Assembly (NCBI RefSeq): GCF_006345805.1
Contig: NC_043005.1
Coordinates: 15,500,001 to 15,564,000, forward strand
Direction: 5' to 3'
DNA length: 64,000 nt
From: Octopus sinensis
Lineage: Eukaryota
Shown here: positions 5,111-41,123 of the stretch, piece after piece
How positions within the stretch are numbered: the first letter of the stretch is position 1
How the letters are laid out: each line of letters starts with the position of its first letter
Made by a program: the position numbers and the translations under genes
The notes under the pieces: generated by a model
Told to the model about the DNA's origin: nothing
Seen by the model: only the letters and a program-made list of their open reading frames with translations
The model's database searches: none

Positions 5111-5827
5111 AAAGTAAAGAGTACATTAGAAAGCATTAGTACCTTAGATAAAGCAGAAAACATTAATTTGTAGTGTCAACGAATCAGTTGGTACTGGTGA
5201 TCATCTTGATTAAAATAAGGCTGTAGCAGTGAGCATGAGGGTCAAAACTAGCTTATAGGAAGTCCAACATCACATACAGGACCTAGGGTGACTTTTTTGA
5301 GATTTTATCTGGGAGTGGGGGATGTATCATATACCAGAGGTTCTCAATGTAAGTGGTACTATACCCAAAGAGACATTGGGCATGTTGAAGGGAATAGTGA
5401 AGTAATTAACATATATTTTACCTATAGTAGTAATTATATTATACATGATAAAACCAGTAATGGTTATCAAAATGAAATGAAATCTCATCAGGCACAAGGA
5501 AGTCATTATCTTGCAATGTATAAAATAAATTTCAACTTTTGTCTTTACTAATTTTCTCTCGTTTCACTGTTAAAAACTTATACAATCCAATTTTAGAGTA
5601 AAAAATTTTAAATTATCATTCACATTAAGTTAGTCTAGCTGTGATACCTCACTTGTGACTTAGGTGGGTGCTACAAAAAAAAAAAAAAAAAAAAGATTAA
5701 GAACTACTGCCGTGATCATCATCATTTAACATCCGTTTTCCATGCTGGCATGGGTTGGATGGTTTAACAGGAGCTGGCCATATGTGTATACACACACAGG
5801 TTCACAGACAATATTCTTTCTTATTAC

Positions 5828-6263
5828 AAATATATAAAAGTAACCCATGCTAGCATGGAAAACAGACGCTAAATGATGATGATGAGGTTGTGTGGTGTCT
5901 GTCTCCTACGATTTAGATTCCTAACTACTCCCACATTTTGCAGTGCAGTTTAACCAAAAGCGGGTATCTTATAGTCGTGATTCATATCGAGCCCTTCTGG
6001 GTATTAGCGCGCATCTACGATGAGTCAACGATTTAAAAAAAATTTACCATCAATGTTTCCCATTTTTAATGAATTTTTGGCATATATAAGGGAAGTAACT
6101 CTCTAAAAATTTATTATTAAATCTCAGAACGTAAAAAGCTACAGTAACACCCCACCCCTTTGTGGTTAGCCATATTGAGATGGCTATTATACTTTACATC
6201 TCTAAAAATGCTTATATAGTTATTTCCCTTACAAACCCGAGCAACGCCGGGTGATACTGCTAG
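5828..6263 (+). mobile_element. Non-autonomous Helitron-like element
   Basis: 3' hairpin CCCGAGCAACGCCGGG (6236-51) followed by CTAG|T; 5' end interrupted by an RTE tail (5842-5885). Confidence 0.75.
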
Positions 6264-6300
6264 TTACAAATAAAAGGTAGATGCAGAAAAAGTCGGTTAC

Positions 6301-6432
6301 CTGTGCAAAGAACTGGGGTTTACTTTTGATACTTTACAGTTAATAAATAACAACTCTGTGGCAAAAGTCTCTAGACTAAAAAGAGACTGCAGGATTGCAT
6401 TTAAATAACAGGTGTTGCCCATATTGGTGAGT
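6301..6432 (-). CDS. USP37: USP37-like coding exon 6, catalytic Cys box
   Basis: Long polypyrimidine acceptor ...ctccccAG, donor AG|GTAACC. (G)LTNMGNTCYLNAILQSLFSLETFATELL is the USP Cys box with the USP26/29/37-type NAILQSLFSL. Confidence 0.93.
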
Positions 6433-6614
6433 CTGGGGAGAATAAGAGAAAGAAAAAAGAAATGAATGCATGAGAACATGTAAGCATTTACAAAGGCAAA
6501 GGATAAATTAAAATAATTTGAAAGGTGGAACAAAATGTAAATAAATTTATCAGTAAATCGGCTTATCTAAATTCATGGCAATAGTACATTTGGGTTATTT
6601 CCCTTAGCTCATGA

Positions 6615-6717
6615 TTGATAGATATAGATAAATATATATATATATATATAGATATAGATATATATATATATATATACAGATACATATATATATAGATACA
6701 TATAGACAGAAATAGAT

Positions 6718-6750
<33 letters not shown>

Positions 6751-6760
6751 TAGATAGCTA
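6615..6760. repeat. (TA)n/(TAGA)n compound microsatellite
   Basis: Direct reading. Confidence 0.95.
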
Positions 6761-7416
6761 AGTATACCAGTTGAATGACCCTGCATTGCTGGGGTTACTG
6801 CTGTTCTTATTCAGATTAGTAAATAATAAATATAAAGATATGTTCTTAAAATTATTTCCAAATATCTATATTTTATTTTAAAATATCCAAATTGTAATGA
6901 TAATAGAATTTCAAACAGAAAATATGTTGATGTTGAAGTACCTCAGGGTAAACAATATTCATTGAGAAATTTTTTTGTTGGTGTTGAAATGAATAAATTG
7001 TTGCTGCTTCCAAGTCACGGAGAGAAGCATGTAGTAGAGAGAGAGATCAAGTCCAACTACCCTGAGGGATTGGCCCTGAGATTTCTTAATTGAAATATCA
7101 AAACTTAGTCTAACTGGAAACTAAAGCGTCTTAAATTCAAATGGAGCATCTGTAGGTACGAGAGGAATTTTGGGAATAAAGACATTTCCTCCTTTGTGAC
7201 TACCTGTTATGATTGTTGCTTGTAAGACATGAAGCTTCATGGAAGTAACAATTAAGCAAGTTCAATTACACAGGCGAGATGGGTCAAGATTCCTAAGCAA
7301 CATAATGGAAGCATCCAGTTTTAGTGTCAAGTTATGTGGTGTCAGTCACCACAAAAATGTATGTATTCACACACACACATATATCATCACATACATTCAC
7401 ACGTTAAATTTTTGTA

Positions 7417-7740
7417 AGCGTAGGAGTGGCTGTGTGGTAAGTAGCTTGCTTACGAACCACATGGTTCCAGGTTCAGTCCCACTGCGTGGCACCTTGGGCA
7501 AGTGTCTTCTACTATAGTCTCAGGCCGACCAAAGCCTTGTGAGTGGATTTGGTAGACAGAAACTGAAAGAAGCCCATCATATATATATATGTTTGTACCC
7601 CACCAACATCGCTTGACAACCAGAGATCAATAGAATAAGTACTAGGCTTACAAAGAATAAGTCCAGGAGTCGATTTGCTCAACTAAAGTCGGTGTTCCAG
7701 CACGGCCACAGTCAAATGACTGAAACAAGTAAAAGAGTAA
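7417..7740 (+). mobile_element. SINE family A
   Basis: Head and tail match family, internal deletion. Confidence 0.88.
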
Positions 7741-7899
7741 TGCAAATATGCAAATGAAAATAAAGTTTATTTGGTAGCCGAAAGATTACTGAATCTTTTG
7801 ATACCCCATACGTCAAAATCAGCAACTAAGTTTTTAGATGCATAAGGAACATACGTGTGCGCACACACAAACTCTGCTTTATATATTAAGAAAGTACTT

Positions 7900-8142
7900 A
7901 TTATTATTGTCACTTTTGATTTTTTAAAACTTGGTATTTATCTTGTCAGTCTCTTTTTCTGAACTGCTAGGTAACAGGGATGTAAACCCTTCAGCACCAG
8001 CTGTCAAGTGGTGGTGGACAAATACAAAGCCATACACAAGGCTTGGTCACCTTACAGCTATAGTAGGAGACACTTGCCCAAGGCGCCACAGTGGGACTGA
8101 ACCTGGAACCATGGGGTTGGAAAGCAAACTTCTTACCACGCA
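7900..8142 (-). mobile_element. SINE family A, diverged
   Basis: gacacttgcccaagg...gggactgaacc match in reverse orientation. Confidence 0.7.
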
Positions 8143-8389
8143 AGAAAAATTTTTCGAGAGGTGAAGGGATGAATTATACAAGATAATTTCAAATACCTAA
8201 GCCCTTCTCCCACTTGAAATTCTAATAAATATATACATGAAATTCCCTGCAACATTGGCAGAATGATAGTCCCAAATGCAAAAAAGAAGAATTATAAACA
8301 AAAAGAACAAATCTGGAATGAAAATTGCCATCCCTTATTAAGGTAAAGTGAAGGATAAAGTTAAAGAGCAAAATATAAACTTCAATTAC

Positions 8390-8524
8390 CCTCTTAAAGC
8401 AAGTTTTGGCAAGGGGTAAATGGCTGGTGCTGGAGGACTTTCTACCTTCTGTGGTTGAGAATTTGTTGACGAGTCCACCAAAAGCCGTGCTCGTTTAACA
8501 GGTGTTGTTTCACATCTTTTCATC
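8390..8524 (-). CDS. USP37: USP37-like coding exon 5
   Basis: tttttctctgtAG acceptor, GG|GTAATT donor. 135 nt, phase 2 to 2: MKRCETTPVKRARLLVDSS...PKLALR(G), leading in frame into the Cys box. Confidence 0.85.
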
Positions 8525-9490
8525 CTACAGAGAAAAAGAATGGTCAGTCAATAATATAATGTAATACCATTGTAAACACTTTTTTTTTTAAAAGTTAATA
8601 TCTATCTTAAACATCTTGAATATATGAAAAAAATTGTTGAATTAATTAGAGAAACAAAATAGGCAGGTAAACAATTTTTTTAAACCAACATCTGAATTTT
8701 AACAGGCAGAAAATTTCTCCAGTTTTGGTTGGTATTCATGAGAAACATACTTGATTAATGCTTGTTTTAATTAAAAATAAAAAATAAAAAAAGATTCAGG
8801 CTACTGTGGCTGTAAAGAAAGCCCTACACTGTTTTTGCACTGTTATCTAAAGTAAACAAATATAGCTTCTATAATTCCAGCAGTTGAGGACAACAATAAT
8901 AATCCTTTTCTACTAAAGGGACAAGGCCAGAAATTTTGATGGTGTGCTAGTTGATTACATCAGTCCAGAGTTCTACTGGTACTTATTTTATTAACCTCTT
9001 AAGAATGAGAGGCAAAGCCAACCTCAGCTGAAATTGAATTCTTGAGTGACATCAAGTCATAAAACCCTCAAGCAAACACTGCACTGAAAAGTCAACAAGA
9101 TAATTTCTACATGGTCATTCAACTTGTAAGAAATAACACCTAAGTCACCTTCAAATCACACTCAACCATCTTACAAAAGAATGACACATTGAAATGGTGT
9201 AATATGCAAGCATCCAGGCCATGTCATCATCTGAGGCTAGTCTCTTCCCTCCCTCCAATCTATCCAAATCCCTGACAAAGATCATGGATGTTTAATTAAG
9301 CCGGAAGGGTAGTGCCCATGACTTTTCAGATTTCCAAAACTTGTAGGAGGTTAGGAAAGTATCCTCAAAAAGGAGACTGAATGTTTGTAACAGACTGGAC
9401 TCTACTGAAAGTCAGCAGAATTGGGTGTCTTCTCAGGCACATAACACAATGGCAGTAGTAAGATTTGAACTCATGATCATAATATCTATA

Positions 9491-9722
9491 TATTTCTTTA
9501 CTACCCACAAGGGGCTAAACACAGAGGGGACAAACAAGGACAGACAAAGGAATAAAGTCGATTACATCGACCCCAGTGCGAAACTGGTACTTTATTTATC
9601 GACCCCGAAAGGATGAAAGGCAAAGTCAACCTCGGCGGAATTTGAACTCAGAACGTAACGATAGACGAAATACTGCTAGGCATTTTGCCCGGCGTGCTAA
9701 CGATTCTGCCAGTTTGCCGCCT
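9491..9722 (-). mobile_element. tRNA-derived SINE, family B (core gcctttcatcctttcggggtcgataaattaagtacc, Meta/MESC-like by recollection)
   Basis: Head GGCGGCGAGCTGGCAGAA..GAGTTCAAATTCC plus conserved core; several copies in window. Confidence 0.85.
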
Positions 9723-10110
9723 TAATATCTATAACTGAGCATTCCATGCCAAACTGAATATTTCCAATGAACCAAATAAAGAAGAAAGAAAATGACAGTT
9801 ACCCCAGCACTCGTTTTACACTAGCTCCACATGAAGATTTATTCTTGTTATAGAAATTGTTTTTTCCAAGAGATAAAATATTTTGCATTTTCTCATTTGC
9901 ACATGCAAGGAAGTTATCCCCATTGGTTGTTGGTGAAGTTGGGGATCTGGAAAAAAAGTAAAAGAATCTTTAATAACCTATTTTTTCATCTTTACATAAA
10001 ATCTGACATCCTCACCCATTCCATTCTTTTTAAAGGATATTGAGAAAATATCATCTTAACCCTTTTGTTACCAACCCGGCTGAAAGCGGCTCTGGCTCTG
10101 TAGTACAAAT

Positions 10111-10563
10111 TCTTCTTCTTCTTCTTCTTACAGCATTCACCCGGGGTGGGTTGAGCTGGCTTCATTCATCCTCAATGCTGCATCTCTCACATTGGGCAGA
10201 GGAACTCTTGAGAGTCAACGGCCATCCAATAAATGTGTAATTATATATCACCTCATTGTAGTAAGGGGGCGAAACGGGAGTGTCAGAGCTATGCTGTCGG
10301 AGACTACGGTTTCTGGTAGGGCCACCCAAGGCGGATTGTTCTGACACCCAGCGGTATCAGGGCAGCACCCGGCTAACAGGGCTCTGGTGAACAGAAGCGT
10401 CTGATCCGGCAACTGGTGGCTTCAACCCGTCCTGTCCCTGCGTCTGCGGAAAATCTACGGCAAACAAGACGTTCTCCCAACAGGGATATACTTGCGGCTG
10501 GGGACCGCTAGCGAACTTCCTATTCCCAAGATCCTTCAAATATTCCTCACGTATATCGCACCT
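10111..10563. mobile_element. Young GC-rich retroposon insertion (RTE-like) with 14-bp TSD and internal inversion
   Basis: TSD tctgtagtacaaat at 10097-10110 and 10564-10577; (GAA)n tail on minus strand; plus-strand part resembles RTE 5'UTR (agctatg...gggccacccaaggcgga). Confidence 0.7.
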
Positions 10564-10651
10564 TCTGTAGTACAAATGTCTCGTTTTCATAAGTTTTGAA
10601 TTAAAATCTTCCACCAAACCGTAGCCACAATTTATGTTCCTAACACCTAGC

Positions 10652-10879
10652 TTAACCCTTTAGTGTTTAAACCGGCCATATCTGGCCCAGATATTCTACA
10701 TGTTTTATATTCAAACTGGCGATATCTAGCCTCTCACACCTAACCTACAATGTCATTTTAAAAATAAACAATCACATCATTGAAACCTCAAAGCTAGAAG
10801 ATAATGCATGATTAATTCAAAACAATTTGAGTGAAAAAGTACTACATTTAACAGAGTAATCTGAACACTAAAGGGTTAA
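10652..10879. mobile_element. TTAA MITE family 2
   Basis: TIR CCCTTTAGTGTT/AACACTAAAGGG, TTAA TSD. Confidence 0.9.
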
Positions 10880-12246
10880 TGATAACCAAGTTATTTTACT
10901 AAAATCTTTGTTATATTTAAAACAATTGAAAGAAACACAGAGCATCTCAACAGAAATATGGTAACAAAAGGGTTAAAGGATATTGAGAAAATATCATCAC
11001 AAAAAAGATGCATTCCTTATGGAATCAACCCCAGTATATTATTAGTACCTATGGAATCTAACACAGCTTCTAAATTGTTGCTCAAACATCAAGAAATAGT
11101 AGCCAAATCTCCCTCATGAATGATAGACCACAGGTCAACCTGACCCACAGCACTACACTGTGTGGCTATGCTGGAGTGCTATACTACATAACAGACAAGA
11201 AATTGTTATGCTGTGGAGCCATTCTACAATACTACATTGTCTGGCTGTGCATCTGCACTACACCACAGTTGCTGTTTCCCCCCCACCACCACCACCCCAA
11301 CCGCCAATCAAAATTACTGAATGGTAAAGTGAAAGTAACAAATATATTGAAAGTAGAGCCCTGAAATTGGATCCCAATCAATTTTGATATTCAACATACA
11401 TGTGCCACTCTCTCTCTCTCTCCCAACACAAACATGGCCAAATATGCCAACTATTTTGGTTCAATCTCAGTGCATGGCACTTTAAACAAGTATCTACATC
11501 TTAGATTAATCCAGGTTTTCTAAGTGAAATTGAGTCCATGGAAATTGGGTGGAAGCTCATCATTATTGTTACAAGATACAATACTCAGCTAGTAGCACTA
11601 TAATACAAGTTGCACTGTACATATAATTCTAAGATTCATCCATCCTGAGAATAGTGTTGCATTGAGTCTGTCTGAAGGTTACATTAAAGATAAAATGTCT
11701 GTGGAATACTCAACCACTTTAACTAATACAATGAGTAAAGTAGTTCTATGAACTGAATAACTGAAACACTCAAAACTAACAAGGAATCCATTAATTTCAT
11801 AGTTAATACTTATCACAATGAACCAGTCAGTGACTTGTTAAATCTTTCTTTCAGATCAAATGTCCAATAATGCTCATGTTCACTGATCATAATAATGAGA
11901 GATTATTCATAACAGGGTTTTTGTGCTTATCTTTACATGATACCTAGACAAGATAGCTTCATGCAGTCAATGGTTTTCTTAGGGTCACATACAAGTTTGT
12001 CTATGTAGTTTCCAAGATTGATTTCTTTTCTAGATTTTCATTTTTTAAATTTCTCAAAATTGCATTTCCTTTATTACCACCTTATGAATATGCTACTTTT
12101 CCCCCAACCAAAATAAAGGAAATTAGCAAAAATTAAAAAAAAATTTTTTTTAAAAGTTATTCCTAATAATGATTATTTATTTTAAAAAATCAAAATATCT
12201 CTTAATCAAACAATTTCATGCAAAGTATAACCACAAATTTATTTAC

Positions 12247-12357
12247 TTTGAAAGACACACGGGGGATTCTTTAGTTCCTTCTTCAAACTGCTTAACTTCT
12301 TTCTTCCGTACCATTTTGGATTTCAATGTATTATCAAGTTTTGAGTTTTCTTTACCA
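12247..12357 (-). CDS. USP37: USP37-like coding exon 4 (KEN-motif linker)
   Basis: tttgcAG acceptor, AA|GTAAAT donor. 111 nt, phase 2 to 2: GKENSKLDNTLKSKMVRKKEVKQFEEGTKESPVCLS(K). Confidence 0.8.
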
Positions 12358-12453
12358 CTGCAAACAAATAATATCAATATTTCAAAATTTAACAACTCAT
12401 TTTTAGAGGTGAACAAAAGTTCATTGTTTATATCTACATTGATTTGATTTATG

Positions 12454-12767
12454 TATTGGGTCATCCCATAAATAATGCGATTTTTTTTCAATTGCATGAA
12501 CTAAAAGTCGGAGGGAGACGAGATAAACTACCAGTATTAACTTGCTATAAAAGCAAGTAGTAATTTTACCTTGTACTTATTCTTGGCATAAATTTTTAAA
12601 AGTGTAGTTCGATTTAAATCGTTATTTTTTTCAAAGCTACAATGGAAGCGACAAAGGAGCATATTCAACGTACTTTGCTTTATGAGTTCAATAAAGGTAA
12701 CAATGCAACAGAAAGTGTGAGGAATATTAATGCAGTATATGGGGATCGGAAAATAAGCGTAAGCCAG
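12454..12767 (+). mobile_element. Mariner 5' end (same family), truncated by SINE A
   Basis: TIR tattgggtcatcccataaataatgcg; ATG at 12642, MEATKEHIQRTLLYEFNKG... Confidence 0.88.
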
Positions 12768-13320
12768 TAGGAGTGGCTGTGTGGTAAGTAGCTTGCTTAC
12801 CAACCACATGGTTCCAGGTTCAGTCCCACTGCATGACATCTTAGGCAAATGTCTTCTACTATAGCCTCGGGTCGACCAAAGCCTTGAGTGGATTTGATAG
12901 ACAGAAACTGAAAGAAGCCTGTCCTATATATATATCCCTCTCTCTCTTTCGGAGAGGCACTGAGCAGCTATACGCACACATACACACATGGCAGTAACTT
13001 CCACCTACTGAATTCAATCACAAAGCTCCGGTTGGCTCGGGGCTATAGTGGAAGACACCTACCCAAAGTGCCACGCAGTGGGACTGAACCCGAAACCATG
13101 TAGCTAGGAAGCAAGCTCCCTAATGTGTGTGTATGTTTGTCCCCCCAGCATCGCTTGACAACCGATGCTGGTGTGTTTACATCCCCGTTACTTAGCGGTT
13201 CGACAAAAGAGACTGATAGAATAAGTACTAGGCTTACAAAGAACAAGTCCTGGATTTGCTCGACTAAATGCAGTGCTCCAGCATGGCCGCAGTCAAATGA
13301 CTGAAACAAGTAAAAGAGTA
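12768..13320 (+). mobile_element. SINE family A with a second family-A head inserted in inverse orientation (about 12990-13115)
   Basis: Plus head 12768-12925, minus head, then plus tail 13130-13320. Confidence 0.8.
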
Positions 13321-13513
13321 ACAGAGCTGTTGATGTTTGAGAAAATAGAAGCAACATTATTTTGCTTCAAAACTGGTGAACGTTGTTGACAAGAAGAGCA
13401 TCAAACTGCAGGAAATTTGCCTCAATGGATTCCTTGATGCATGCAAACATAGAAAAGGGATGTGAAAGTGATGATATACATTTCAGGAGAAGCAGATAAA
13501 AAATGAGATTTAC

Positions 13514-13607
13514 CCGTAAGCTTGGCGAGTCATCCTTTCAGCAGAGACATTAAATGTCTTGTTCGATAAAGGAGTAGTAGCACTAACTTCTGCTCGGTTG
13601 ATTGGCG
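13514..13607 (-). CDS. USP37: USP37-like coding exon 3 (linker)
   Basis: catttcAG acceptor, GG|GTAAAT donor. 94 nt, phase 1 to 2, open: (T)PINRAEVSATTPLSNKTFNVSAERMTRQAY(G). Confidence 0.8.
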
Positions 13608-13808
13608 CTGAAATGTATAGAAATACCATTAATTGTCTATACAGTTGCATATACACTTACCTTGGTTATATTTCAGATGGAAATCTCAGCAAGCCTTTTA
13701 GTTATGAAAAATTAACTGAAAACATTTGTTTCGTTAACCAATTCATTACCATAATTCTATTGAAATATGGAAACTTTGTTTCAAGTAATTTTGAAAAGAA
13801 TAAGGAAT

Positions 13809-14035
13809 TTAACCCTTTTGTGACCAACCCGGCTGAAACCGGCCCTGGATCTGAGTACAAATGTCTTGTTTTCATAAGTTTTGAATTAAAATCTCCCACC
13901 AAACCTTAGTCACAATTTATGTTCCTAACAGTAGCTAAATGATAAATAAGTTATTTTACTAAATTCTTTGTTATATTTAAAATAATTGGGAGAAACAAAG
14001 AGCATCTCAAAATAAATACAGTAACGAAAGGGTTA
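13809..14035. mobile_element. TTAA MITE family 1, nested in an older related MITE (about 13735-14140)
   Basis: TTAA-CCC...GGG-TTAA ends. Confidence 0.88.
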
Positions 14036-14165
14036 ATAATTATTATTAACTTGGTGTTTGGAACATAAATTTACTTGAAATTTTGGTGGGAAGTTTTAGT
14101 TTAGATCACTTTGAAACAGGAAATTTGTATCATAGCTTTTTTTATTTACTTATTGGTACGGTATT

Positions 14166-14500
14166 CATCATCATCGTTTAACGTCTGCTTTCCATGCTAG
14201 CATGGGTTGGACGGTTTGACTATGGTAATCATCATCATCGTTTAACATCCGCTTTCCATGCTAGCATGGGTTGGACCATTTGACCGAGGTCTGGCAAACC
14301 AGATGGCTGCACCAGACCGATCTGGCAGAGTTTCTACAGCTGGATGCCCTTCCTAATGCCAAACCACTCCAAGAGTGTAGTGGGGGCTTTTATGTGCCAC
14401 TGATAATGGCCATGCTCAAATGGTGCTTTTTATGTGCCACTTGCACAGGTATTGGTTGTTGCTATTTAGAGATGGTCTTTGGAGGACAAAAGTTTCTTAT
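14166..14500 (-). mobile_element. RTE 3'UTR-derived short element (tail duplicated)
   Basis: (CAT)n-gtttaacgtccgctttccatgctagcatgggttgg motif twice, then body. Confidence 0.85.
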
Positions 14501-14744
14501 GTAAGAACTACTCATCTCTCATCCAGGTCGTCCCATAGAACACCCCAAACAGGGATTTCGGTTGCACATTAGGAGTCACAGGGTGCTGCTCCATGTGGTC
14601 CCATAGTTTCCATCTAACTAGGAATATTAGGGTCTCATCCATTGTCTTGTATTCAAGATCCTCTGCTAGTTCAAAGCCAGGAATCAGATCTGTTAGGTCC
14701 TACCAATAACTAAGTCCATGCCCTGCTGCTGACGCTTTGATTTA

Positions 14745-14885
14745 TTGCCATTAAGGTTTTGTCTGTCTCCTACCCTCCGACCTGTCTAGCCAGGTAAGAC
14801 CTGCCTGAAGATTTCTCTCCCTCTAGCATAGCTCTCCGGGTCAACAGAGCACACAGGCAATTCACCGCGACAATGTACTTGTTAA
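14745..14885 (-). mobile_element. RTE-like 5'UTR fragment
   Basis: ttgtcgcggtg...gacccggagagctatgc...ggacaggtc-like motif order typical of RTE leaders (recalled, not searched). Confidence 0.45.
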
Positions 14886-15918
14886 ACTGGCCGTTGACCA
14901 CACAGTAGTTCTACCGCCCTTTGATGGGTCTTATTTTCGTCCCACAGGGAGTCCAACAATCACCCTCCTCACCAAGCAAGCTTGATGGGGTCGCCAGTTT
15001 AGTCGCCAATGACCTGACCATGCGACAGGTTGTACTGGGTTACATGTTACCAGTAGCACTCAAGAGCGACCTGACCAATAGAACTACCGAAGTCGCAAAC
15101 TGACATGAAATGAGATACATTATCTTATATTCAAGAACATAATTTGTGAGTGCTTTTCAAATACTAAGTACTCCTGTGCATCTGCTATACATAAAACCCT
15201 TTCCATCAACCTGGTTGCAATCTTAATGCACCTCTTACAGAACCAGATTTTACACCGAGTTTCACAGTACAGAATTCTTATCTATACTTATTCTTGCACA
15301 TAGAATATAAACATTTCCCAGACAACAACAGTTCTAGATTTTTCTCCTATTAACTAGAATGTTTGTCTTTGCAAAGTCTACTTTAAAATTTAATCATAAT
15401 AGGTATCACCATATTGGTACAGTCAAAGTGCTTGCTTCCTAACCATATGGTCTCAGGTTTGATCCTATTGCATGGCACTACAGGCAATGGTTTTTCTATA
15501 ACCTCAGGCTGACTAATGCCTTTTAAGTGAAATTTAGCAATTCAATTGCTGCATAGACGCCCAGCACGTGGCTAGACATTGTGCTGAAAAATCTTGGTGA
15601 ATTAAAGAAAGTAAGGAAAAACAAATATAAAATTATGAAAACTCAACACGCTAAACTGAAATGTTGACCCTCTGAAATCCCCTTCCTGTATATCTTTTGC
15701 GGTTGTTACTAGCAATCATTTAAGTGAAATGTTAACTGTGTTAATCTAACCCTTCTTGGAGAGCCCCTTCCTCTGGACAAAATCAGTTTAAAAAAAAGGT
15801 AAAAAGATAACATTAACTGCAAAAACAGTATGAAGGAGACATTGCAAGCAAGAAGTGTCATCTCTCTCAACTGACTGAAATGCCAAATACAATTCAGAAG
15901 ACAAAAAAAAATGCTTAC

Positions 15919-16082
15919 TTTTCCCTGCATTGCTATTTTTGTTATATTCTTCAAAGAAATCAGAAATCAGAGATTTTTGGTATTAAATGATCATCCGGAT
16001 TAAAATGCACTAAAAGGCCATCAGCAAATTCCAGAAGAAGCCGTTTCTTAAAAATTAATCGTTTGATGTTTGACCGAATCAA
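15919..16082 (-). CDS. USP37: USP37-like coding exon 2 (PH-like part 2), frameshifted by a 7-bp tandem duplication
   Basis: Acceptor tttctAG, donor AA|GTAAGC. Phase-0 start LIRSNIKRLIFKKRLLLEFADG resembles USP37 LSHNIKNVVL. At 164 nt it hits TGA at 15960-62. Removing one AGAAATC copy gives 157 nt, an open frame and the phase-1 end required by the next exon. Confidence 0.8.
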
Positions 16083-16217
16083 CTAGAAACATAAAAAGCA
16101 AAAGTTTTTAAATTAATTTTAAAAAATAAAAAAATTTATTAGAAGACAAATCAAAGAGTTATGTAAAATAGTGTTTTCTTAATGCATTATGTCAAATTTG
16201 GAAGAAACAATAAGACA

Positions 16218-16365
16218 TTTTTTACTCTAGGCACAAGGCCCGAAATTTTGGGGGAGGGAGCCAGTCGATCAGATCGACCCCAGTATGCAACTGGTACTTA
16301 ATTTATTGACCCCGAAAGGATGAAAGGCAAAGTCGACTTCGGCGGAATTTAAACTCAGAACGTAA
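16218..16365 (-). mobile_element. SINE family B, 5' truncated
   Basis: Core and B-box match. Confidence 0.8.
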
Positions 16366-16800
16366 AAGAAACAATAAGGTATTTGTGGTGCTCACTGTAT
16401 TGAACCCAGTAAATGGATATGAAAAACTTACACTAGTGACAAACTAAAAACCTAAGGATAGTGAAATATTTTAGCCTTGAACTATTTCATTGTATGAACC
16501 ACTTCCATTCATTCAAGTCAATATAATATTTAGACAAGGCACTGTGTGTGCATGCATGTACATGCATGTGTGTATATGCACATAAAATGCTATCATGCAT
16601 AACACATTACCAATAAGTTTTGGGCTCAGTTATCAGTCCTACACTAAACTCTTTTATTGCATTAATAAATCCAGTCATTGCATCTGAGGATAGGCTAAAA
16701 TGCAGAGTTCAAACATGCATAAATATACACACAGACCAGCCTAATTCTCTTCCTGCAGGCAGAGAAATTTAATTATGAACAAAAAAATTCATTTCACACC

Positions 16801-17990
16801 TTAACAGAATGTGATTTTAACCCTTTCGTTACCAACCGGCTCTGGCTTTGAGTACAAATGTCTTGTTTTCATAAACTTTGAATTAAAATCTTCCGCCAAA
16901 CCTTAGTCACAATTTATGTTCCTAACACTAGCTGAATGATAACTAAGTTATTTTACTAAATTCTTTGTTATATTTAAAGTAATTGAAAGAAACACAGAGC
17001 ATCTCAAAATAAATAGTAACTAAAGGGTTAACAGAATGTGATATTAACCCTTCGTTACCAACCCAGCTGAAACTGGCTCTGGCTTTGAGTACAAATGTCT
17101 TGTTTTCATAAACTTTGAATTAAAATCTTCTGCCAAACCTTAGTCACAATTTATGTTCCTAACACTAGCTGAATGATAACTAAGTTATTTTACTAAATTC
17201 TTTGTTATATTTAAAGTAATTGAAAGAAACACAGAGCATCTCAAAATAAATATAGTAACTAAAGGGTTAACAGAATGTGATATTAACCTTTCGTTACCAA
17301 CCCAGCTGAAACTGGCTCTGGCTTTGAGTACAAATGTCTTGTTTTCATAAACTTTGAATTAAAATCTTCTGCCAAACCTTAGTCACAATTTATGTTCCTA
17401 ACACTAGCTGAATGATAACTAAGTTATTTTACTAAATTCTTTGTTATATTTAAAGTAATTGAAAGAAACACAGAGCATCTCAAAATAAATATAGTAACTA
17501 AAGGGTTAACAGAATGTGATATTAACCCTTTCGTTACCAACCCAGCTGAAACCGGCTCTGGCTTTGAGTACAAATGTCTTGTTTTCATAAACTTTGAATT
17601 AAAATCTTCTGCCAAACCTTAGTCACAATTTATGTTCCTAACACTAGCTGAATGATAACTAAGTTATTTTACTAAATTCTTTGTTATATTTAAAGTAATT
17701 GAAAGAAACACAGAGCATCTCAAAATAAATATAGTAACTAAAGGGTTAACAGAATGTGATATTAACCCTTTCGTTACCAACCCAGCTGAAACTGGCTCTG
17801 GCTTTGAGTACAAATGTCTTGTTTTCATAAACTTTGAATTAAAATCTTCTGCCAAACCTTAGTCACAATTTATGTTCCTAACACTAGCTGAATGATAACT
17901 AAGTTATTTTACTAAATTCTTTGTTATATTTAAAGTAATTGAAAGAAACACAGAGCATCTCAAAATATATATAGTAACAAAAGGGATAAC
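16801..17990. repeat. Tandem array of 5 TTAA MITE family 1 copies (about 240-bp unit)
   Basis: Each unit is TTAA-cagaatgtgat(a/t)-TTAA-MITE; MITE TTAA starts at about 16817, 17044, 17283, 17522, 17762. Confidence 0.95.
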
Positions 17991-18836
17991 GGAACCCCAA
18001 TGATTTATATACATACATTTTCATGTATATGTGTAAGTACATATTTTACGTACTTACATCTGTACATGTGTGTACTAATGTATGCACAGATTTCATGTGC
18101 ATGTACATATGTAAGCATTTATAATTTTTAAATTAAAGGTGAACTTACAGCATCTCTGTTGCTTTCTTAACCCCCAATTTTGCATATTATATCCCCCTCC
18201 CCCACTTTTTATCACCTTCTATCTCACTCCACCTCAAAGATATAATGCACAAACTCTCTCTTATTCTGTTTACATTAGTAGAACATTGAATATAGACAAA
18301 CATCTTTGGAAAGAAGACAAAATTCCTCCTCATACCCAACTATCTTCAATGATTCATGGAATTTTAAAACATTTTGTTTTTCTACATACAACCCAAAATT
18401 AATCACCCAAAAAGTTTGTGGGTGTAAATAGAAATATTTTTTTTTATCTATCTTGTCTGAGTGATAAATGCTAAAAATCAAATGTACTGAAAATAAATTT
18501 TTGCTAAATGTAACAAAACAAACACTAGTTAAATTATAAGGTATTGGCTTAAGAAAACCTGGCTTTTTGTGGGCCCTTAACTTTTCTCTATTTTCACAGT
18601 GGAAATATTGCTGGTAAATTTAGCAGCTTGTTTCATTATTTAACTAACATTAATCCAGTCAACTTTACCCTTCTTTCACCTAGGGGTCAATGTAATTTAA
18701 TTGTCCTTTACCCTCAAAATTGCTAACCTTGTGCTAAAATAAAAAAAAAAGTTATTTGAATAAAGAATAAAATACCAAACCTGCTACTAAGGGAGTCTTT
18801 ATAAGCATGACCAAATTGCTAGAAATAGCAGTCAAA

Positions 18837-19068
18837 GGCGGCGAGCTGGCAGAAACGTTAGCATGCCGGACGAAATGCTTAGTGGTATTTCATCTGTCTT
18901 TACGTTCTGAGTTCAAATTCCGCCAAGGTCGACTTTGCCTTTCATCCTTTCGGGGGTCAATTAAATAAGTACCAGTTATGCACTGGGGTCAATATAATCC
19001 ACTTAATCAGTTTGTCTGTCCTTGTTTGTCCCCTTTAAGTTTAGCCCCTTGTGGGCAATAAAGAAATA
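18837..19068 (+). mobile_element. SINE family B
   Basis: Full-length match. Confidence 0.88.
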
Positions 19069-19957
19069 AGAAATAGCAGTCAAATCACCCTCAAATCACA
19101 CAATACCAACTTAAGGATATTTTAAACAATGTAGTCATTAAACCACCCACTATATTTATGGGGAAAATATCTTTTTTTTTAAATGGTCACATTGGGAACA
19201 TCTTCAATCATAGCTCTGCTTCATCAGGCATGACATGAGGGTAGACTGCAGCAAAAGATTCTGTAAGGAGGAATTTAACCAATACTCTGAAGTACATGTA
19301 ACGAGAGAAACTTATTTATCGCAAATAACCAGTTGTTTGGCCATGTATGCTTTCACAATGGACGAGCCCTCTCGCTCCCCATTTTAGCCCAGCTGAATCA
19401 TAATTCGGGAAAATTAAATAAATGTGGATGAGAAACAAATGGGGGATGGTCTGGATATTTGCAATAGAATGGCCCTGAATTCTGCTAAGGGTAACAAAGA
19501 ACCAAGGTTGTGGTTTAACTCCAGGTTAATTCTAAACAAGTAAACCTATGACCAAAGGCAATCCAGCAATGACTGCTCTACCTTTTCCCAATAAACACTA
19601 TCAAATGTGTCCTTTTAAATTTTGACAGTAAGATAGGGTTTTTGGACATTTGGCTGCTACTTCTAAGCACTCAAGCAACCACATATAGGCTGTCTCACTG
19701 GTAGAAATCTTGCTAATAGAACAGTCTAATAGTGTTGGTGTTAAACAGGATGACTGACTGTATCACCAATAAAATCCACTGGTTATTAATGTTTTTATAT
19801 AACTGCATCCCACCATAACGTCTTTCCCCACTAAGCATCAATTTCTAACTAAGGAGACTACATTCTTATACGAAGATGACAAAGATGTGTAGAAGAGATG
19901 TTATAACCTTTAAACGGTTGGGCCCCAACAAGTGGCAATATGTATGGAAAACTATAA

Positions 19958-20180
19958 GTTTAGTGTTTAAATCGGCCAAATCCGGCCCAACATATTCTAC
20001 ATGTTTTATATTCAAACTGGTGATATCTAGCCTCTCACTCCTAACCTACAATATCATTCTGAAAATAAACAATCACATCATTGAAACCTCAAAGCTGTAA
20101 GATAATCCAGGATTAATTCAAAACAATTTGAGTGAAAAAGTATTACAGTTAACAGAGTAATCTGAACACTAAAGGGTTAA
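19958..20180. mobile_element. TTAA MITE family 2, left end damaged
   Basis: Body and right TIR match. Confidence 0.8.
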
Positions 20181-20413
20181 AGCAATAATAATGTTTGTAC
20201 CTTGCCTGAGAGTATGATTTTGTTTTAACTTTTTTGCAACCATATTTCTGTTAAAATAAACTGCTTTTGTCTCAAATAATTTACAAAAAGTTTTTTTTTA
20301 ATTTTAAATTAAAACCAGCAAAATTTTATGTTAATTTATGCTCTAAACATAGATTAATAATGGTGAAGTTATTTTACTAAATACTTTGTATTTAGGAAAA
20401 TAACTGACATTAT

Positions 20414-20640
20414 TAACCCTTTCGTTACCAACCCGGCTGAAACCGGCTCTGGCTCTGAGTACAAATGTCTTGTTTCCTTAAGTTCTGAATTAAAATCTTC
20501 CCCCAAACCTTAGTCACAATTTATGCAACTAACAGTAGCTGAATGATAACTAAGTTATTTTACTAAATTCTTTGTTATATTTAAAGTAATTGAAAGAAAC
20601 ACAGAGCATCTCAAAATAAATACAGTAATGGAAGGGTTAA
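20414..20640. mobile_element. TTAA MITE family 1, nested in an older related MITE (about 20200-20775)
   Basis: TTAA-CCC...GGG-TTAA ends. Confidence 0.88.
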
Positions 20641-20846
20641 GCTATGTTTTATAACATAGATTAGCATGAAATTTTGATGAACGGTTTTAAGTTAGATCAC
20701 TTTAAAACAAGGAAATTTGCGCCATAGAATCAGGGATAGTGGTTTCAGACAGGTTGGTAACAAAAGGGTGTTAATGAGATCCTGAAAGCTTTGAATGGTG
20801 GCATTCATTCAATCTGTTCAGGTAACTTGAAGAATAAATAACTTAC

Positions 20847-21017
20847 CTTAAATGTTATAGCTGGGTAAACCTTATTGGTACTCAACATCACATTACAGCA
20901 CCAAACATTGTTGGTGTTCTTTAGATCAAGGGTTCCACTCTTCCAGCTGACATTGCCAGTCTTTTGAGTATAATACTTAATGGAACCAGACCATTCAAGT
21001 GTATCTGGAAGCTTCAT
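20847..21017 (-). CDS. USP37: USP37-like deubiquitinase, first coding exon (N-terminal PH-like domain, part 1)
   Basis: Acceptor tttcAG at 21049-50, 31 nt of leader, ATG at 21017. Encodes MKLPDTLEWSGSIKYYTQKTGNVSWKSGTLDL...PAITFK, resembling the human USP37 N-terminus as I recall it (LKIHGPIRIRSMQTGITKWKEGSFEI). Phase-0 donor AAG|GTAAGT. Confidence 0.85.
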
Positions 21018-21207
21018 GCTGATGGTGCTAGGTGAATGAGCTGCAATTCTGAAACAAAAAAAGGGCCTATAAAAATAATATGTTAACAAGCAGTACTTGT
21101 AGAAATTACTTGATTATTTCGAGAACTGTAAGATGATCAAAAGTTTATAGAGAACCAGATAATATATAATTGCTTTTGAAATTGATTTTTTTCAAACCTT
21201 TGATGCT

Positions 21208-21649
21208 TTAACTCTTTAGTATTTAAACTGGCCATATCCGGCCAAAATATTTAATCTGTTTTATGTTTGCCAGCTCCGTCTGGCACCTGTGCGGGTGGCA
21301 CCTAAAAAGCACCTACTACACTCACGGTGTGGTTGGCGTTAGGAAGGGCATCCAGCTGTAGAAACACTGCCAGATCAGACTGGGCCTGGTGCAGCCTTCT
21401 GGCTTCACACACCCCAGTTGAACCGTCCAACCCATGCTAGCGCGGAAAGCAGACGCTAAATGATGATGATGATGATGATGTTCAAACTGACCAGATCCAG
21501 GCTCTCACACCCACCCTACAATGTTATTCTACATTAGGTAATTACACCATCAAGATCTTGAAGATATGAGATAATCCATGATTAATTCAAATCAATGTGA
21601 ATCAATAAGCATTATGTTTGATAGAATAATCAGAACACTAAAGGGTTAA
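21208..21649. mobile_element. TTAA MITE family 2 interrupted by RTE 3' element
   Basis: Both TIRs present. Confidence 0.85.
21268..21480 (+). mobile_element. RTE 3'UTR-derived short element inserted in a MITE
   Basis: Family match with (ATG)n tail. Confidence 0.87.
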
Positions 21650-22005
21650 ATGGTGTAAAAGTCCAAATACATAGTATTTAATGGGCAGTCTTAGGAAACA
21701 ACATCTCTGAAAGCTATTGTCCTTGTTATGCATCTGATAATTATCTGGAGTGTTGCTATTGGTTTTCATTTTACATCAAGAAGTAAACGATATTAACTAT
21801 GGAAAGAAATCAAAAACATCTATAATATTCTGCTACTGTATGACTGTGTTAGTAAAGCTTCAACAAACGTTAATATGCTGTATTACATCCTTATTTTCGT
21901 AACAGTGAAAAGTTCATATGGCTAAACTTGAACTATGTGGTCCTAAATCCACAGCACCTCGGGCAAGACTCTTCTACAAAAGCCTCAAGTGAAATTCAGT
22001 CAACA

Positions 22006-22350
22006 GGAGCGTAGGAGTGGCTCTGTGGTAAGTAGCTTGCTTACTAACCACATGGTTCCGGGTTCAGTCCCACTGCGTGACACCTTGGGCAAGTGTCTTC
22101 TACTATAGCCTTGGGCCGACCAAAGCCCTGAGTGAATTTGGTAGATGGAAATTGTGTCTGTGTTTGTCCCCCCAACATCGCTTGACAACCGATGCTGGTG
22201 TGTTTACGTCCCCATAACTTAGTGGTTCAGCAAAAGAGACCGATAGAATAAGTACTAGGCTTACAAAGAACAAGCCCTGGGGCGATTTGCTTGACTAAAG
22301 GTGGTGCTCCAGCATGGCCACAGTCAAATGACTGAAACAAGTAAAAGAGG
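22006..22350 (+). mobile_element. SINE family A
   Basis: Head and tail match. Confidence 0.88.
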
Positions 22351-22578
22351 GGCAGTATGGAAGATCAGTGTGTGTGTGTGTGGTTGTGTGTGTAGAGAGA
22401 GAGAGTTAGAAAGAGAAAGAGTGATTACATTTATGCTGCTTAAAACCAGTATTATCAATAGTAACATTGTGGTTCAACAAATACAAATTGATAAAGCACC
22501 AAACTTTAAAATAATAAGATTGATATGCTTGACCAAACTCTTGAAGGCAGTGCCCCAGCATCACTGCCACCCCATAGC

Positions 22579-23015
22579 CATCGTCATCATCGTTTAATGT
22601 CCGCTTTCCATGCTAGTAGCATGGGTTGGAAGATTTGACTGAGGACTGGTGAACCAGATGGCTGCACCAGGCTCCAATCTGATCTGGCAGAGTTTCTACA
22701 GCTGGATGCTCTTCCTAACACCAACCACTCCGAGAGTGTAGTGGGTGCTTTTATGTGCCACTGGCACGAGGGCCAGTCAGGCAGTACTAGCAACGGCCAT
22801 GCTCAAATGGTGTTTTTTACGTGCCGCCTGCACAGGAGCCAGTCCAGCGGCACTGGCAACAACCTCGCTCGAATGTTTTTTCACGTGTCACTGGCACAAG
22901 TGCTGCTAGTAAGGCGATGCTGGTAACGATCACATTTGAATGGTGCTTTTTACGTGCCACCGGCATGGAAGCCAGTTAACTGTTCTGACAACGATCACGC
23001 TCGGATGGTGTAAAA
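22579..23015 (-). mobile_element. RTE 3'UTR-derived element with VNTR
   Basis: Family match. Confidence 0.85.
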
Positions 23016-23415
23016 GATTAAATGAATAAAAAGATATATAAATACTATAATTTATTAACATTATTATAACTGCAACAATTATATATTTACAAACATACTT
23101 GACGTGACTGTCTTCAGTAACTCCTTGACTCACACTTGGCCCTTACGTATGTATTTGCATTCACACATATTGTGACATATATAAAAATATACAGAAGATT
23201 TTCCCATTCTTGTTGCAAAATAACTATCTTATACACCAAGATACAATTCAAGAATACTTCAAACACAGTGCAACATCTTGATATTCTTCCTATCACTCTT
23301 TCCAGTTTAAACCTCCCATATCACTTTTATCGTTTTCCTCTTGAATGCTTAAACTCAACCCCCTCATTTCTTACAATTTTCTGTTTTACTTTCTCTCCCT
23401 CTCCCTGTCATGTCA

Positions 23416-23704
23416 GTGGAGGCACATGGCCTAGTGGTTAGAGCAGCAGACTCGCGGTCGAGAGGTCGCAAGTTTGAATCTCAGACCAGGTAATGTGTAT
23501 GTTTATGAGCGAAACACCTAAGCTCCACGCAGCTCCGGCAGAAGGAAATGGCGAACTTCAGTTGACTCTTTCGCCACAACTTTCTCTCACTCTTTCCTCC
23601 TGCATCTTGCAGCTCACCTACGACGGACCGGCCTCCCGTCCAGGTGGGGAACCTATACGCCAAGGAAACCGGCCCTTATGAGCCAGGCGTGGCTCAAGAA
23701 GGAA
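23416..23704 (+). mobile_element. tRNA-derived SINE, family C1 (tail with V-domain-like gacggaccggcctcccgtccagg)
   Basis: A box TGGCCTAGTGG, B-box-like GTTTGAATC, unique body. Confidence 0.8.
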
Positions 23705-23947
23705 TGTCAGAGCTTTACACAAAAAGCATGTAAGAACATATTGTATTAATATAACAATTCACAAGACAGAGTTTATAACAGATTGATGACTGTGTATAGC
23801 TTGTGTCATAAATTTGCTTCTTAACCCTATGGTTTTCAGCTTTGTCCTACTGCATAACAGCTAGGGTAGATGTCCTCTATTGTAGCTTCAAAGAAAATGC
23901 TGCTTTCTCAGTGAATTTGGTGGACAGGAACTGTACAAAGCTCATTA

Positions 23948-24165
23948 TACAAAGGAGTACTGGAAAGCTCCTGGCTTTGAGTAAAAGAAAATACAGGAGT
24001 ATCAGTTAATTATGATTTTATTCAACATATTCCTCTCTCAAATTCACACTTATTGAAGTGGCTCTTCAGTTTTTTTTAAGCCCTGTAAAAGAACTTGGAA
24101 ATTTAGGCTTCCAACCAGGCCTTCAGTGATACCCTTAAAGTTTGAAACTTTTCAGCACCTCCTCC
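23948..24165. mobile_element. Old mariner-derived MITE
   Basis: Ends tacaaaggagtactggaaag / aacttttcagcacctcct resemble mariner TIRs. Confidence 0.45.
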
Positions 24166-24811
24166 TGTGTGCATATGTATGTGCCTATGTAACTGTTAGA
24201 ATTCAGGGCATTTTTTATGAAAAACAGCCGAGCAACAAATGGTGAAATTCATCATCATTTCCCATCAGCAAATCATGAGGTGTGTTTGGTTTGCAATTTC
24301 AAAGATTTGTAGAATAAGAGATTTTTTTTTTTTTTTTAAGTTTTAAATATTTTAAAAATGATTGAATGGCCATGACCGGAACATGTTGACCATAAACCTG
24401 CAGAATCAAGAATGTCCTGGAGCAAGCTAACGACAACCTCTGTTGACACAACCCTTAATTAGCTTGTGTGTGCATGCACAAACACACACATGCATTCTGA
24501 CCATTGATCTGTTTGATCTCTGGGTGTGAAGTAAGATAATGTACAATTAACACAAGTTTAAGTAGTTTGATTTATATACATTATAGTTGTCATTCCTCTT
24601 TCAATCATGACTACAACTATTAACTGCCCTCAACTCTATCACCATATCAATTACGATCACCACCACTACTACTACTGACCACCACTCAATATTAAATTTA
24701 CAAAAAGGTTTCTCAGACCAATATTATTACACTGAAGTGGTTTAGACCAATGTAATGTATCCAATCAAAACATGGTTTTTTTTATGCAAACAGCATAGGG
24801 TTAAGAGTGGC

Positions 24812-25195
24812 TGCGTAGGAGTGGCTGTGTGGTAAGTAGCTTGCTTACCAACCACATGGCTCCTGGTTCAGTCCCACTGTGTGGCACCTTGGGCAAGTGT
24901 CTTCTACTATAGCCTCGGACCAACCAAAGCCTTGTGAGTGGATCTGGTAGACGGAAACTGAAAGAAGCTTGTCATATATATGTATATATATGTGTTTGTG
25001 TTTGTCCCCCCCAACATCGCTTGACAACCGATGGTGGTGTGTTCACATCCCCGTAACTTAGCAGTTCGGCAAAAGAGACCGATAGAATAAGTACTAGGCT
25101 TCCAAAGAATAAGTCCTGGGGTCGATTTGCTCGACCAAAGGCAGTGCTCCAGCATGGCCACAGTCACATGACAGAAACAAGTAAAAGAGTAAAAG
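24812..25195 (+). mobile_element. SINE family A
   Basis: Full-length match. Confidence 0.9.
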
Positions 25196-25424
25196 AGAGA
25201 GAGAGCATTTTACAAACAGTAAATCTTCATTAGACCATACAAACAGGAAGAAATATATCTGTTTTAGCTGATCGTCCAAGTTAATACTGCACACATATGT
25301 ATGCTATTAGAAATGTATAGATTCTATGTTGAACTTGATATACATCAAGAAAATTGCAGAAAAGACAGTAAATACAGTTTTACTTTATAAAACAAATTTA
25401 TCATCATCATTTTTATCATATCAG

Positions 25425-25922
25425 AACCAAAATCGAAGTCGATCAACATCAATGGAAATTGCGGCTGTGATACCAGTGCCGGTGACAAGTAAGCGAACCA
25501 TCCGATTGTGGCTGTTGCCAGCGCCGCCCCGACTGGCCTCCGTGCCGGTGACACGTAAAAAGCACCATCCGTTCGTGGCCATTGCCAGCGCCGCCCCGAC
25601 TGGCCTCCGTGCCGGTGGCATGTAAAAGCACCATCCGTTCATGTCCGTTGCCAGCCTCGCCTCGCCCCCGTGCCTGTGGCACATAAAAGCACCATCCATT
25701 CGTAGCCATTTGCCAGCACCGTCTGGCACCTGTGCGGATGGCACGTAAAAAACACCCACTACACTCGCGGAGTGGTTGGCATTAGGAAGGGCATCCAGCT
25801 GTAGAAACACTGCCAGATCAAACTGGGCCTGATGCAGCCTTCTGGCTTCACAGACCCCAGTTGAACCGTCCAACCCATGCTAGCATGGAGGGCGGACGCT
25901 AAATGATGATGATGATGATGGT
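25425..25922 (+). mobile_element. RTE 3'UTR-derived element with about 67-bp VNTR
   Basis: Repeat units start at 25517, 25584, 25650; (ATG)n tail. Confidence 0.9.
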
Positions 25923-26140
25923 GATTTTAACAACCATTTTTCTATGCTAGCATGAGTCAGACAGAGTTCATTGATGCACATTTTCTATGACCAGATGCCT
26001 TTCCTGTCATCAACTGTAAAAATTGGATGAGGTTAAAGGGTGACCAATCATACAGGAGTTAAAAGAGAGAAGAGATGATTGACAGTATAGAAAAAGGGAT
26101 AGGGTTAGATGAAGAGCAGCAGAATAGTGATAATAATAAT

Positions 26141-26485
26141 CATCATCATCATCATCGTTTAACGGCCACTTTCCATGCTAGCATGGGATGGACGGTTCAA
26201 CTGGGGTCTGGGAAGCCAGAAGGCTGCATCAGGCCCAGTCTGATCTGGCAATGTTTCTACGGCTGGATGCCCTTCCTAACGCCAACCACTCTGTGAGTGT
26301 AGTGGGTGCTTTTTACGTGCCACCGGCACAGGTGCCAGACGGGGCTGGCAAACGGCCATGGTCGGATGGTGCTTTTTACGTTGTCACCGGCAAGGTTGGC
26401 AACGGCCACGTTCGGATGGTTCACTTACGTGCCACTGGCACTGGTATCACAGCTGCAATTTCCATAGATGTTGATCGATTTCGAT
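26141..26485 (-). mobile_element. RTE 3'UTR-derived element
   Basis: Family match, inverted relative to 25425-25922. Confidence 0.9.
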
Positions 26486-26779
26486 AATAATAGAAGAGAG
26501 AGGAGTGGGTGAAAGTAAGATGACATGGTGTTGTGTATGTATATATAATTACCGTGGTATGGAAATCAGGTAAAAAAAATGTAAATTCATTTAAATAACC
26601 AATACTCTCCACACTATATACCGAGTGCTCTCTCCCTCTTTCATTTACAAACTGCAACATTTGAATGTATGAATGTGAGCATAATTCAAATTCTGTGCAT
26701 CTGTTGAATTGTTAAACAAATGAGAGTGGGGTGCATTGTGCAAATTGTAGAGAGAGCAGATGGTTGATAGAAACTGAAA

Positions 26780-28122: not shown

Positions 28123-28384
28123 GAGACACACATACACACTGATATAATACCAGTCTTTTGTTGTGAGTTTTCTCCCATAGCTGCAACTAAACTCATCATT
28201 GCAAACCATGCAAATGAGAAAATACCTGTTAATTATATGGTGCTTCACCTCATGGGATATGTTTACAGCTAGGAAGACTGATTCATGGAGAGCAAAGCAT
28301 CTTGAAACACAAGTATTGAAATCTTTACATGTTCATTAGACTTGTTAAAAAAAACAGCCAAATATCCTGCAAATCACAACCATC

Positions 28385-41100: not shown

Positions 41101-41123
41101 CATTTTAATATTCTATACACCAA

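Follow-up and report, generated by a model that had tools for sequence, protein, structure and literature searches.

Why should a gene for a conserved cell-cycle deubiquitinase, USP37, carry a frameshift in its second coding exon in Octopus sinensis, and does the animal really lack the enzyme? The question comes from a window of 64,000 nucleotides (C9:15500001-15564000), which is the whole stretch of DNA analyzed here and from whose first nucleotide all positions given without C9 are counted. A sequence-only reading of the window had claimed that a 7-bp tandem duplication shifts the frame of a USP37-like gene and stops it after about 97 residues, and the sequence itself, Tandem Repeats Finder and the spliced frame all agree on this point. 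The plus strand reads AGAAATC-AGAAATC-AGA at 15955-15971, which Tandem Repeats Finder describes as a repeat of period 7 with 2.4 copies and 100% matches, and the spliced frame that starts at ATG 21017 on the minus strand yields 97 aa before it meets TGA at 15962-15960. From shuffles one expects 0.12 perfect period-7 runs of 17 nt or more in the 64-kb window; four are present, and of the three besides this one, two are low-complexity runs made only of A and T. Taking out one heptamer leaves an open frame of 405 aa, from exon 1 into exon 9 as far as the window edge, and gives exon 2 a phase-1 end that fits exon 3; the earlier statement that removal of one unit restores the exon is thereby borne out. 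The truncated 97-aa product itself was looked up in public assemblies and is not on record there.

Exons were placed with cephalopod homologues as guides, and in the window eight coding exons are complete and a ninth is partly included (Table 1). All of the window exons have AG/GT splice borders, just as the canonical splice sites read from the sequence had implied, and in-frame Met codons, which had been noticed before for exons 3-5, are present in exons 3, 4, 5 and 6.

Table 1. Features of the USP37-like locus in the window and of its second copy. Positions are those of the window unless they are preceded by C9.
Feature	Position	Strand	Remark
Block 1, copy A	C9:15485133-15562476 (window -14867 to 62476)		77 kb; 1..62476 inside the window
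Block 1, copy B	C9:14762788-14851390		inverted relative to copy A
Coding exon 9, partial	1..146	-	cut by the window edge; the gene extends left of the window
Coding exon 8	2478..2604	-	
Coding exon 7	6301..6432	-	Cys box, GNTCYLNAILQSLF
Coding exon 6	8390..8524	-	
Coding exon 5	9803..9946	-	
Coding exon 4	12247..12357	-	
Coding exon 3	13514..13607	-	holds the Met that starts the public copy B model
Alternative terminal exon, intron 2	15741..15772	-	in frame only with intact exon 2
Coding exon 2	15919..16082	-	164 nt here, 157 nt ancestral; second half of the PH domain including the C-terminal helix
7-nt tandem duplication	15955..15971	-	minus strand TCTGATT-TCTGATT-TCT; in coding exon 2
Premature TGA from the frameshift	15960..15962	-	product of 97 aa with C-terminal end ...HLIPKISDF
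Coding exon 1	20847..21017	-	57 codons; encodes the first half of the PH domain; undamaged in copy A
(CA)n/(TG)n microsatellite	62448..62476	.	end of block 1, start of block 2
Block 2 start	62470..64000	.	direct orientation; twin from C9:14660924 onward; block of at least 44 kb

Is the window, then, the only place of USP37 in this genome? When the genome was searched with exon 2, a second match appeared at C9:14808435-14808628, on the opposite strand and 7 nt shorter. A second USP37 locus, whose existence had been raised as a possibility, thus exists 0.7 Mb away, and it is the full-length orthologous locus with an intact exon 2. For a comparison of the two sites, 134 kb around the window (C9:15450001-15584000) were set against 130 kb at the second one (C9:14740001-14870000). 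Both share block 1, which consists of 41 kb of upstream DNA and USP37 exons 1-20; we call the block in the window copy A and its counterpart copy B. They are about 99% identical overall, and 97-99.4% piece by piece, and lie 634 kb apart. Beyond block 1 the flanks are not colinear between the copies, and neither of the two compared regions contains a run of N. The 3′ junction is sharp: homology ends inside exon 20, and copy A then enters a SINE that is absent from copy B. Young transposable elements (TEs) lie beyond this junction of copy A, and about 30 kb farther out than the SINE its left flank has single-copy DNA. The other junction is also sharp and falls at a (TG)n run of about 30-45 nt, where block 2 begins. 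Near copy B the two segments are separated by 60-100 kb; around copy A they stand side by side as a mosaic, and one of the two is flipped. Neither junction is a long repeat common to both copies, such as would cause an overlap misjoin. It is to be noted that the genome-wide searches for duplications rest on shorter, TE-poor queries, as 10-kb queries were swamped by TE copies.

Where does the heptamer stand in this pair? It is single in copy B (C9:14808530), in Octopus vulgaris and in Octopus bimaculoides, and must therefore be a derived duplication in copy A; a comparison with other octopod genomes had been proposed, and the two congeners both have an intact exon 2. When 2.3 kb of exon and introns were compared, the copies were near-identical and the heptamer was the only difference inside exon 2. 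A perfect 7-nt unit has been doubled and the rest of the exon is unchanged, which is the likeness to a frameshift by slipped-strand tandem duplication; in an assembled sequence, from which alone it is seen here, real slippage and an artefact of consensus or polishing look alike. The sequence of copy A around the heptamer is moderately noisy, and for this reason the heptamer may be a consensus error.

What would the broken exon have encoded? The best database relatives of the gene are USP37-like, namely a full-length protein of 912 aa in Argonauta hians, a 918-aa cephalopod protein which comes from a public read assembly, and vertebrate USP37, and Pfam finds the UCH domain (PF00443, peptidase C19) in the USP37-like proteins. 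A Pfam scan of the product of exons 1-2 gave no match, the USP37 N-terminal family PF16674 included, and a profile-profile comparison of this N-terminus with those of vertebrate USP37 gave a weak match with 30% probability. The fold was examined on the O. vulgaris protein P0014, which is identical to exon 1 of copy A joined with exon 2 of copy B and whose C-terminus corresponds to the alternative terminal exon in intron 2. Its AlphaFold model (pLDDT 82.7) has seven strands and a C-terminal helix, and its best match in the PDB is 3U12, the PH domain of human USP37 (E 5.5e-5, TM 0.72). Intact exons 1-2 are thus predicted by this model to encode a PH fold of the USP37 type, and together with the UCH domain this upholds the USP37-like identity proposed from the sequence. 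The heptamer hits the C-terminal helix of the PH domain, and the frameshift in copy A cuts the helix after residue 97. The cephalopod protein has the same domain order as human USP37, a PH domain followed by the USP/UCH catalytic domain, and the Cys box and His box of the human enzyme are conserved in copy B and in other cephalopods. Human USP37 has a UIM region inserted in the catalytic domain. In the cephalopod proteins the Pfam families PF16674 and UIM are undetected; Pfam UIM (PF02809) is listed for the vertebrate matches and not for the cephalopod ones, and it is a short motif that is easily missed. Compared with human USP37, copy A in the window lacks the His box and has an incomplete PH domain.

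The lack of the His box brings us to the state of the whole gene in the two copies. None of the 23 coding exons is missing from copy B (14.80-14.86 Mb), which reaches the stop codon, and its UCH profile coverage is complete (1-254). In copy A, by contrast with copy B, exons 21-23, which encode the His box, were not found in 35 kb of its flank, and genome-wide these exons occur only at copy B. Four lesions are seen in it: exon 2 has the 7-nt duplication, exon 18 a deletion and exon 20 an insertion of 1 nt each, and exons 21-23 are missing. Which of the two is the old locus? Colinearity of copy B with O. vulgaris extends past the 3′ end of USP37 and into a downstream Methyltransf_16 gene, which also lies downstream of USP37 in O. 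bimaculoides; homology of copy A to O. vulgaris ends at exon 20, and copy A is not at the orthologous position marked by that gene. Because copy B is colinear with O. vulgaris, neighbor included, it is taken as the orthologous locus and copy A as derived. The heptamer therefore seems to sit in a redundant, 3′-truncated duplicate of the 5′ two-thirds of USP37, as the alignment of the copies tells us. Truncated and with two more frameshifts, copy A is unable to encode an active deubiquitinase, whether the heptamer is duplicated or not.

Could copy A be rescued all the same? It had been supposed that different splice sites might keep the frame, or that re-initiation at a downstream Met might give an active enzyme without its PH domain. 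As for splicing, no GT lies between the heptamer duplication and the stop codon, and with the sole candidate donor upstream, TTA|GTGCAT, the splice is in phase 0 and a stop follows in exon 3. Downstream of the duplication each of the three frames is accounted for. Since there is no usable donor before the stop and the candidate is in the wrong phase, alternative splicing is unable to restore the frame. In favor of re-initiation one can cite the in-frame Mets of exons 3-6 and the fact that public models without PH are placed on copy A (P0012) and on copy B (P0002). Any product of copy A would nevertheless lack the His box and end early at the exon-18 frameshift, and the copy A model P0012 covers only positions 1-188 of the 254 of the UCH profile (E 2.9e-28), so that the catalytic domain is truncated. 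The chance of a rescue of either kind is close to nil in our eyes, and as a catalytically active enzyme made from copy A it is already refuted by the missing exons.

Copy B, too, is damaged, though in another exon. Within 170 nt of its exon 1 (C9:14804325-14804496) there are seven derived changes, G>T making a nonsense codon, +CT, -A, A>T, G>T, -G and A>T, three of which are frameshifting indels. Exon 1 of copy A agrees with the outgroups O. vulgaris and O. bimaculoides, and its protein is identical to this part of P0014. The outgroups support exon 1 of copy A and exon 2 of copy B as the ancestral states, and exons 3-10 are identical between the copies; in exon 14 an S-to-Y change is specific to copy A. 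The garbled exon 1 of copy B is most likely a local consensus error.

How good, in general, is the consensus of the two copies? Between them 587 differences were counted, 214 substitutions and 373 indels. Almost half of all differences (290 of the 587) are 1-nt indels, and half of these 1-nt indels are in homopolymers; about 28 indels are of at least 4 nt, many of them tandem, and these look like real variants. The distribution is patchy, with 113 of the 587 differences in window 18-22 kb, a 4-kb patch within which exon 1 of copy B falls, with only 15 mismatches in window 24-41 kb (about 0.1% diverged), and with none in several whole kilobases. When polarized with O. vulgaris, derived changes are about equally numerous in each copy, fall in complementary patches and are dominated by 1-nt deletions. 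We read this pattern as a poorly polished long-read consensus, and in places neither copy's sequence can be relied on. Poor polishing is expected where short reads map to two places.

The damage in both copies explains a curious state of the public annotations. None of the three Octopus annotations has the PH domain attached to its USP37 model. In O. sinensis this is because each copy is damaged in a different PH exon, and the two-copy damage thus accounts for the defect in the public annotation of USP37. The 784-aa model P0002, which matches copy B, takes as its start a Met in exon 3 because exon 1 of copy B is garbled, and P0012 (677 aa), the model of copy A, begins in the intron that precedes exon 3 and is closed by the exon-18 frameshift. 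In O. bimaculoides (CM046610.1) USP37 is split by an N gap that lies in exon 5, and the models are an 'uncharacterized' protein of 178 aa, which is the PH part, and USP37 models of 640/713 aa. In O. vulgaris the exons are all intact and in phase, and the annotation has PH-only models which end in intron 2, P0014 (119 aa) and P0015 (153 aa), and a separate 784-aa model without PH; this split may be inherited from earlier octopus protein sets. The genomes of O. vulgaris and O. bimaculoides nonetheless encode an intact USP37 with its PH domain, and the full-length protein is found in Argonauta and another cephalopod. As a separate observation, P0012 swaps the end of exon 7 for an extra stretch of 36 residues from intron 7 (window 2980-3087, minus strand), despite exon 7 and its donor being identical in both copies.

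How, then, did a second and truncated copy come to be placed on the same scaffold? We give about an even chance to the reading that copy A is a very young inverted partial segmental duplication, as the arrangement of the sequences suggests. A very recent complex duplication would have set block 1 (inverted) beside block 2 (direct), next to unrelated single-copy DNA. Copy A would be an unprocessed pseudogene-like fragment with an age of about 0.2 My, if its approximately 0.3% substitutions are scaled to the approximately 4% intron divergence and the 2.5-My split from O. vulgaris. The heptamer in copy A would be either a real slippage mutation or a consensus/polishing error, copy B would be the functional USP37 gene, and USP37 of the organism would be unaffected either way. 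Because there are 214 substitutions and about 28 indels of at least 4 nt between the copies, they represent two distinct molecules and not the same reads used twice. Copy A resembles known unprocessed duplicated pseudogenes in that it keeps its introns, shares a chromosome with a near-identical parent locus, is cut short where the duplication breaks off and has frameshifts; it is unusual in being extremely young (about 0.3% diverged), inverted and a two-block mosaic with a 634-kb spacer, and it is known here from the assembly sequence only. Against a real duplication, the records of O. vulgaris and O. bimaculoides show a single USP37 locus each, although a single locus in the congeners is also expected if the duplication is younger than the species split. 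It is also hard to see how noisy long reads could resolve two 77-kb copies at 99.7% identity. The comparison with O. vulgaris upstream of the gene reached the equivalent of window 42.7 kb, which is 20 kb short of the junction, and in the copy flanks examined no conserved genes that could serve as anchors were found, only TEs.

The objection from read accuracy leads to the reading that we think falls short of probable and still has to be taken seriously, namely that the assembly contains a false duplication. There would be a single USP37 locus, and the copies would be alternative haplotypes or leftover reads, produced by misjoins at the SINE or young TEs and at the microsatellite and then poorly polished, as short reads map twice; the heptamer would be an indel for which the sequenced animal is heterozygous, or else an error of the consensus. 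Duplicated BUSCO genes amount to 5.2% in the O. sinensis assembly GCA_006345805.1 against 0.5% and 0.4% in two congeners (PMC10700109). As this is ten times more than in the congeners, false duplications are common in this assembly, and the excess throughout the assembly speaks for one here. Heterozygosity of 1.22% is reported for the sister species O. vulgaris (PMC10700109), and the divergence of 0.1-0.45% between the copies lies below this value, which is compatible with two haplotypes. The differences are dominated by indels, patchy and complementary, and the copies jointly rebuild the exact N-terminal protein of O. vulgaris. An assembler could have kept two paths owing to a minisatellite of 3 versus 105 units and other structural differences, the left flank of copy A is full of young TEs with 99%-identical copies genome-wide, a classic site for chimeric joins, and it is copy A, not copy B, that has the strand and approximate chromosomal position of O. 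vulgaris USP37. On the other side, no gaps bound either copy, both being in N-free sequence with non-homologous flanks, and there is single-copy DNA in the left flank of copy A. The exon 20 junction is not at a repeat common to copy B, the (TG)n run is too short for an overlap misjoin, and two or more independent misjoins are needed. Haplotypes as similar as copies A and B are normally collapsed by assemblers, not split, and a divergence of about 0.1% is judged to be too little for noisy long-read assemblers to separate two haplotypes. Compared with false duplications described from long-read plus Hi-C assemblies, the case is alike in its near-identical second copy, its BUSCO excess and its indel-dominated differences; typical false duplicates, however, are on a small unplaced scaffold or bounded by gaps, while copies A and B, each with unique flanks, are embedded in long parts of a chromosome scaffold that are free of gaps. 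The sequence-only reading had itself allowed for an assembly error, and for the heptamer, possibly for the whole of copy A, this is a live option.

It had also been suggested that the frameshift is a recent null allele of a functional USP37, either heterozygous or homozygous, and this would include the case that copy A is the other haplotype. The doubled heptamer is of the replication-slippage type and sits in an otherwise clean exon, and multi-nucleotide tandem indels that look real are found elsewhere between the copies. The copy that carries the heptamer, however, also lacks exons 21-23 and has two more frameshifts, so that copy A cannot be regarded as a functional allele broken by the heptamer alone, and an intact exon 2 is present at the orthologous locus. 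As a claim of gene loss the idea is thus unsupported, and as a null allele of any kind we hold it to be quite improbable; even when it is pooled with the rescue of copy A, the two jointly are improbable. More speculative is a scenario in which copies A and B are real inverted repeats younger than 0.3 My, recombination between them inverted the 634-kb segment, copy A, for which there is a public gene model, is transcribed, and its fragment with the Cys box and without the His box could act as a decoy for partners of USP37. An inversion of the segment in O. sinensis was proposed because the full gene is on opposite strands in O. sinensis and O. vulgaris, and the scenario as a whole is a long shot.

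Whether copy A is a very young segmental duplication or a product of assembly, the finding is an ordinary one, a lesion in a dead or spurious duplicate, because no active enzyme can come from copy A and the orthologous locus has its exon 2 intact. It gives a caution: the apparent loss of a conserved cell-cycle deubiquitinase proved to be damage to a redundant and truncated copy, which lies in a duplicated part of the reference that is badly polished. If the duplication is true, it would be a very young inverted-repeat pair able to mediate inversion, which is of modest interest for octopus genome evolution.

Several observations were made on the side. In O. sinensis the full gene (copy B, at 14.8 Mb) is encoded on the plus strand, whereas O. 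vulgaris has it on the minus strand at a comparable relative place (OX597823.1:16748585-16806234); either an inversion between the two inverted copies or a contig set in the wrong orientation could account for the difference. A TE segment of at least 3.4 kb to the left of block 1 (C9:15466364-15469796) has at least 40 copies in the genome with 96-99% identity, and as these are mostly 99% identical, the family is very young and probably active. An ORF of a mariner-type transposase is within block 2. A model of a simple inversion haplotype, in which block 2 reaches block 1, was considered and rejected: it expects a twin of C9:14752877-14755278 near 15.654 Mb, which is absent. This segment has two more copies at 96%, C9:14701459-14703879 and C9:15603674-15606085, both inverted, and many relatives of 70-73% clustered on scaffold C12, and together these indicate an older layer of duplication in the region. 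Intron 8 contains a minisatellite derived from a SINE, with a unit of about 114 bp, which has 3 units in copy A (window 1960..2320) and about 105 units over 12 kb in copy B (C9:14822181-14834128); intron 8 of O. vulgaris is short, as in copy A. Finally, a third fragment of USP37 lies between the copies at C9:14928396-14928720. In this fragment exons 8 and 9 are joined exactly, with intron 8 gone, and about 320 nt into intron 9 are included; it is 98.8% identical to the gene and has a SINE immediately upstream, and its structure suggests a retro-copy made from an incompletely spliced transcript.
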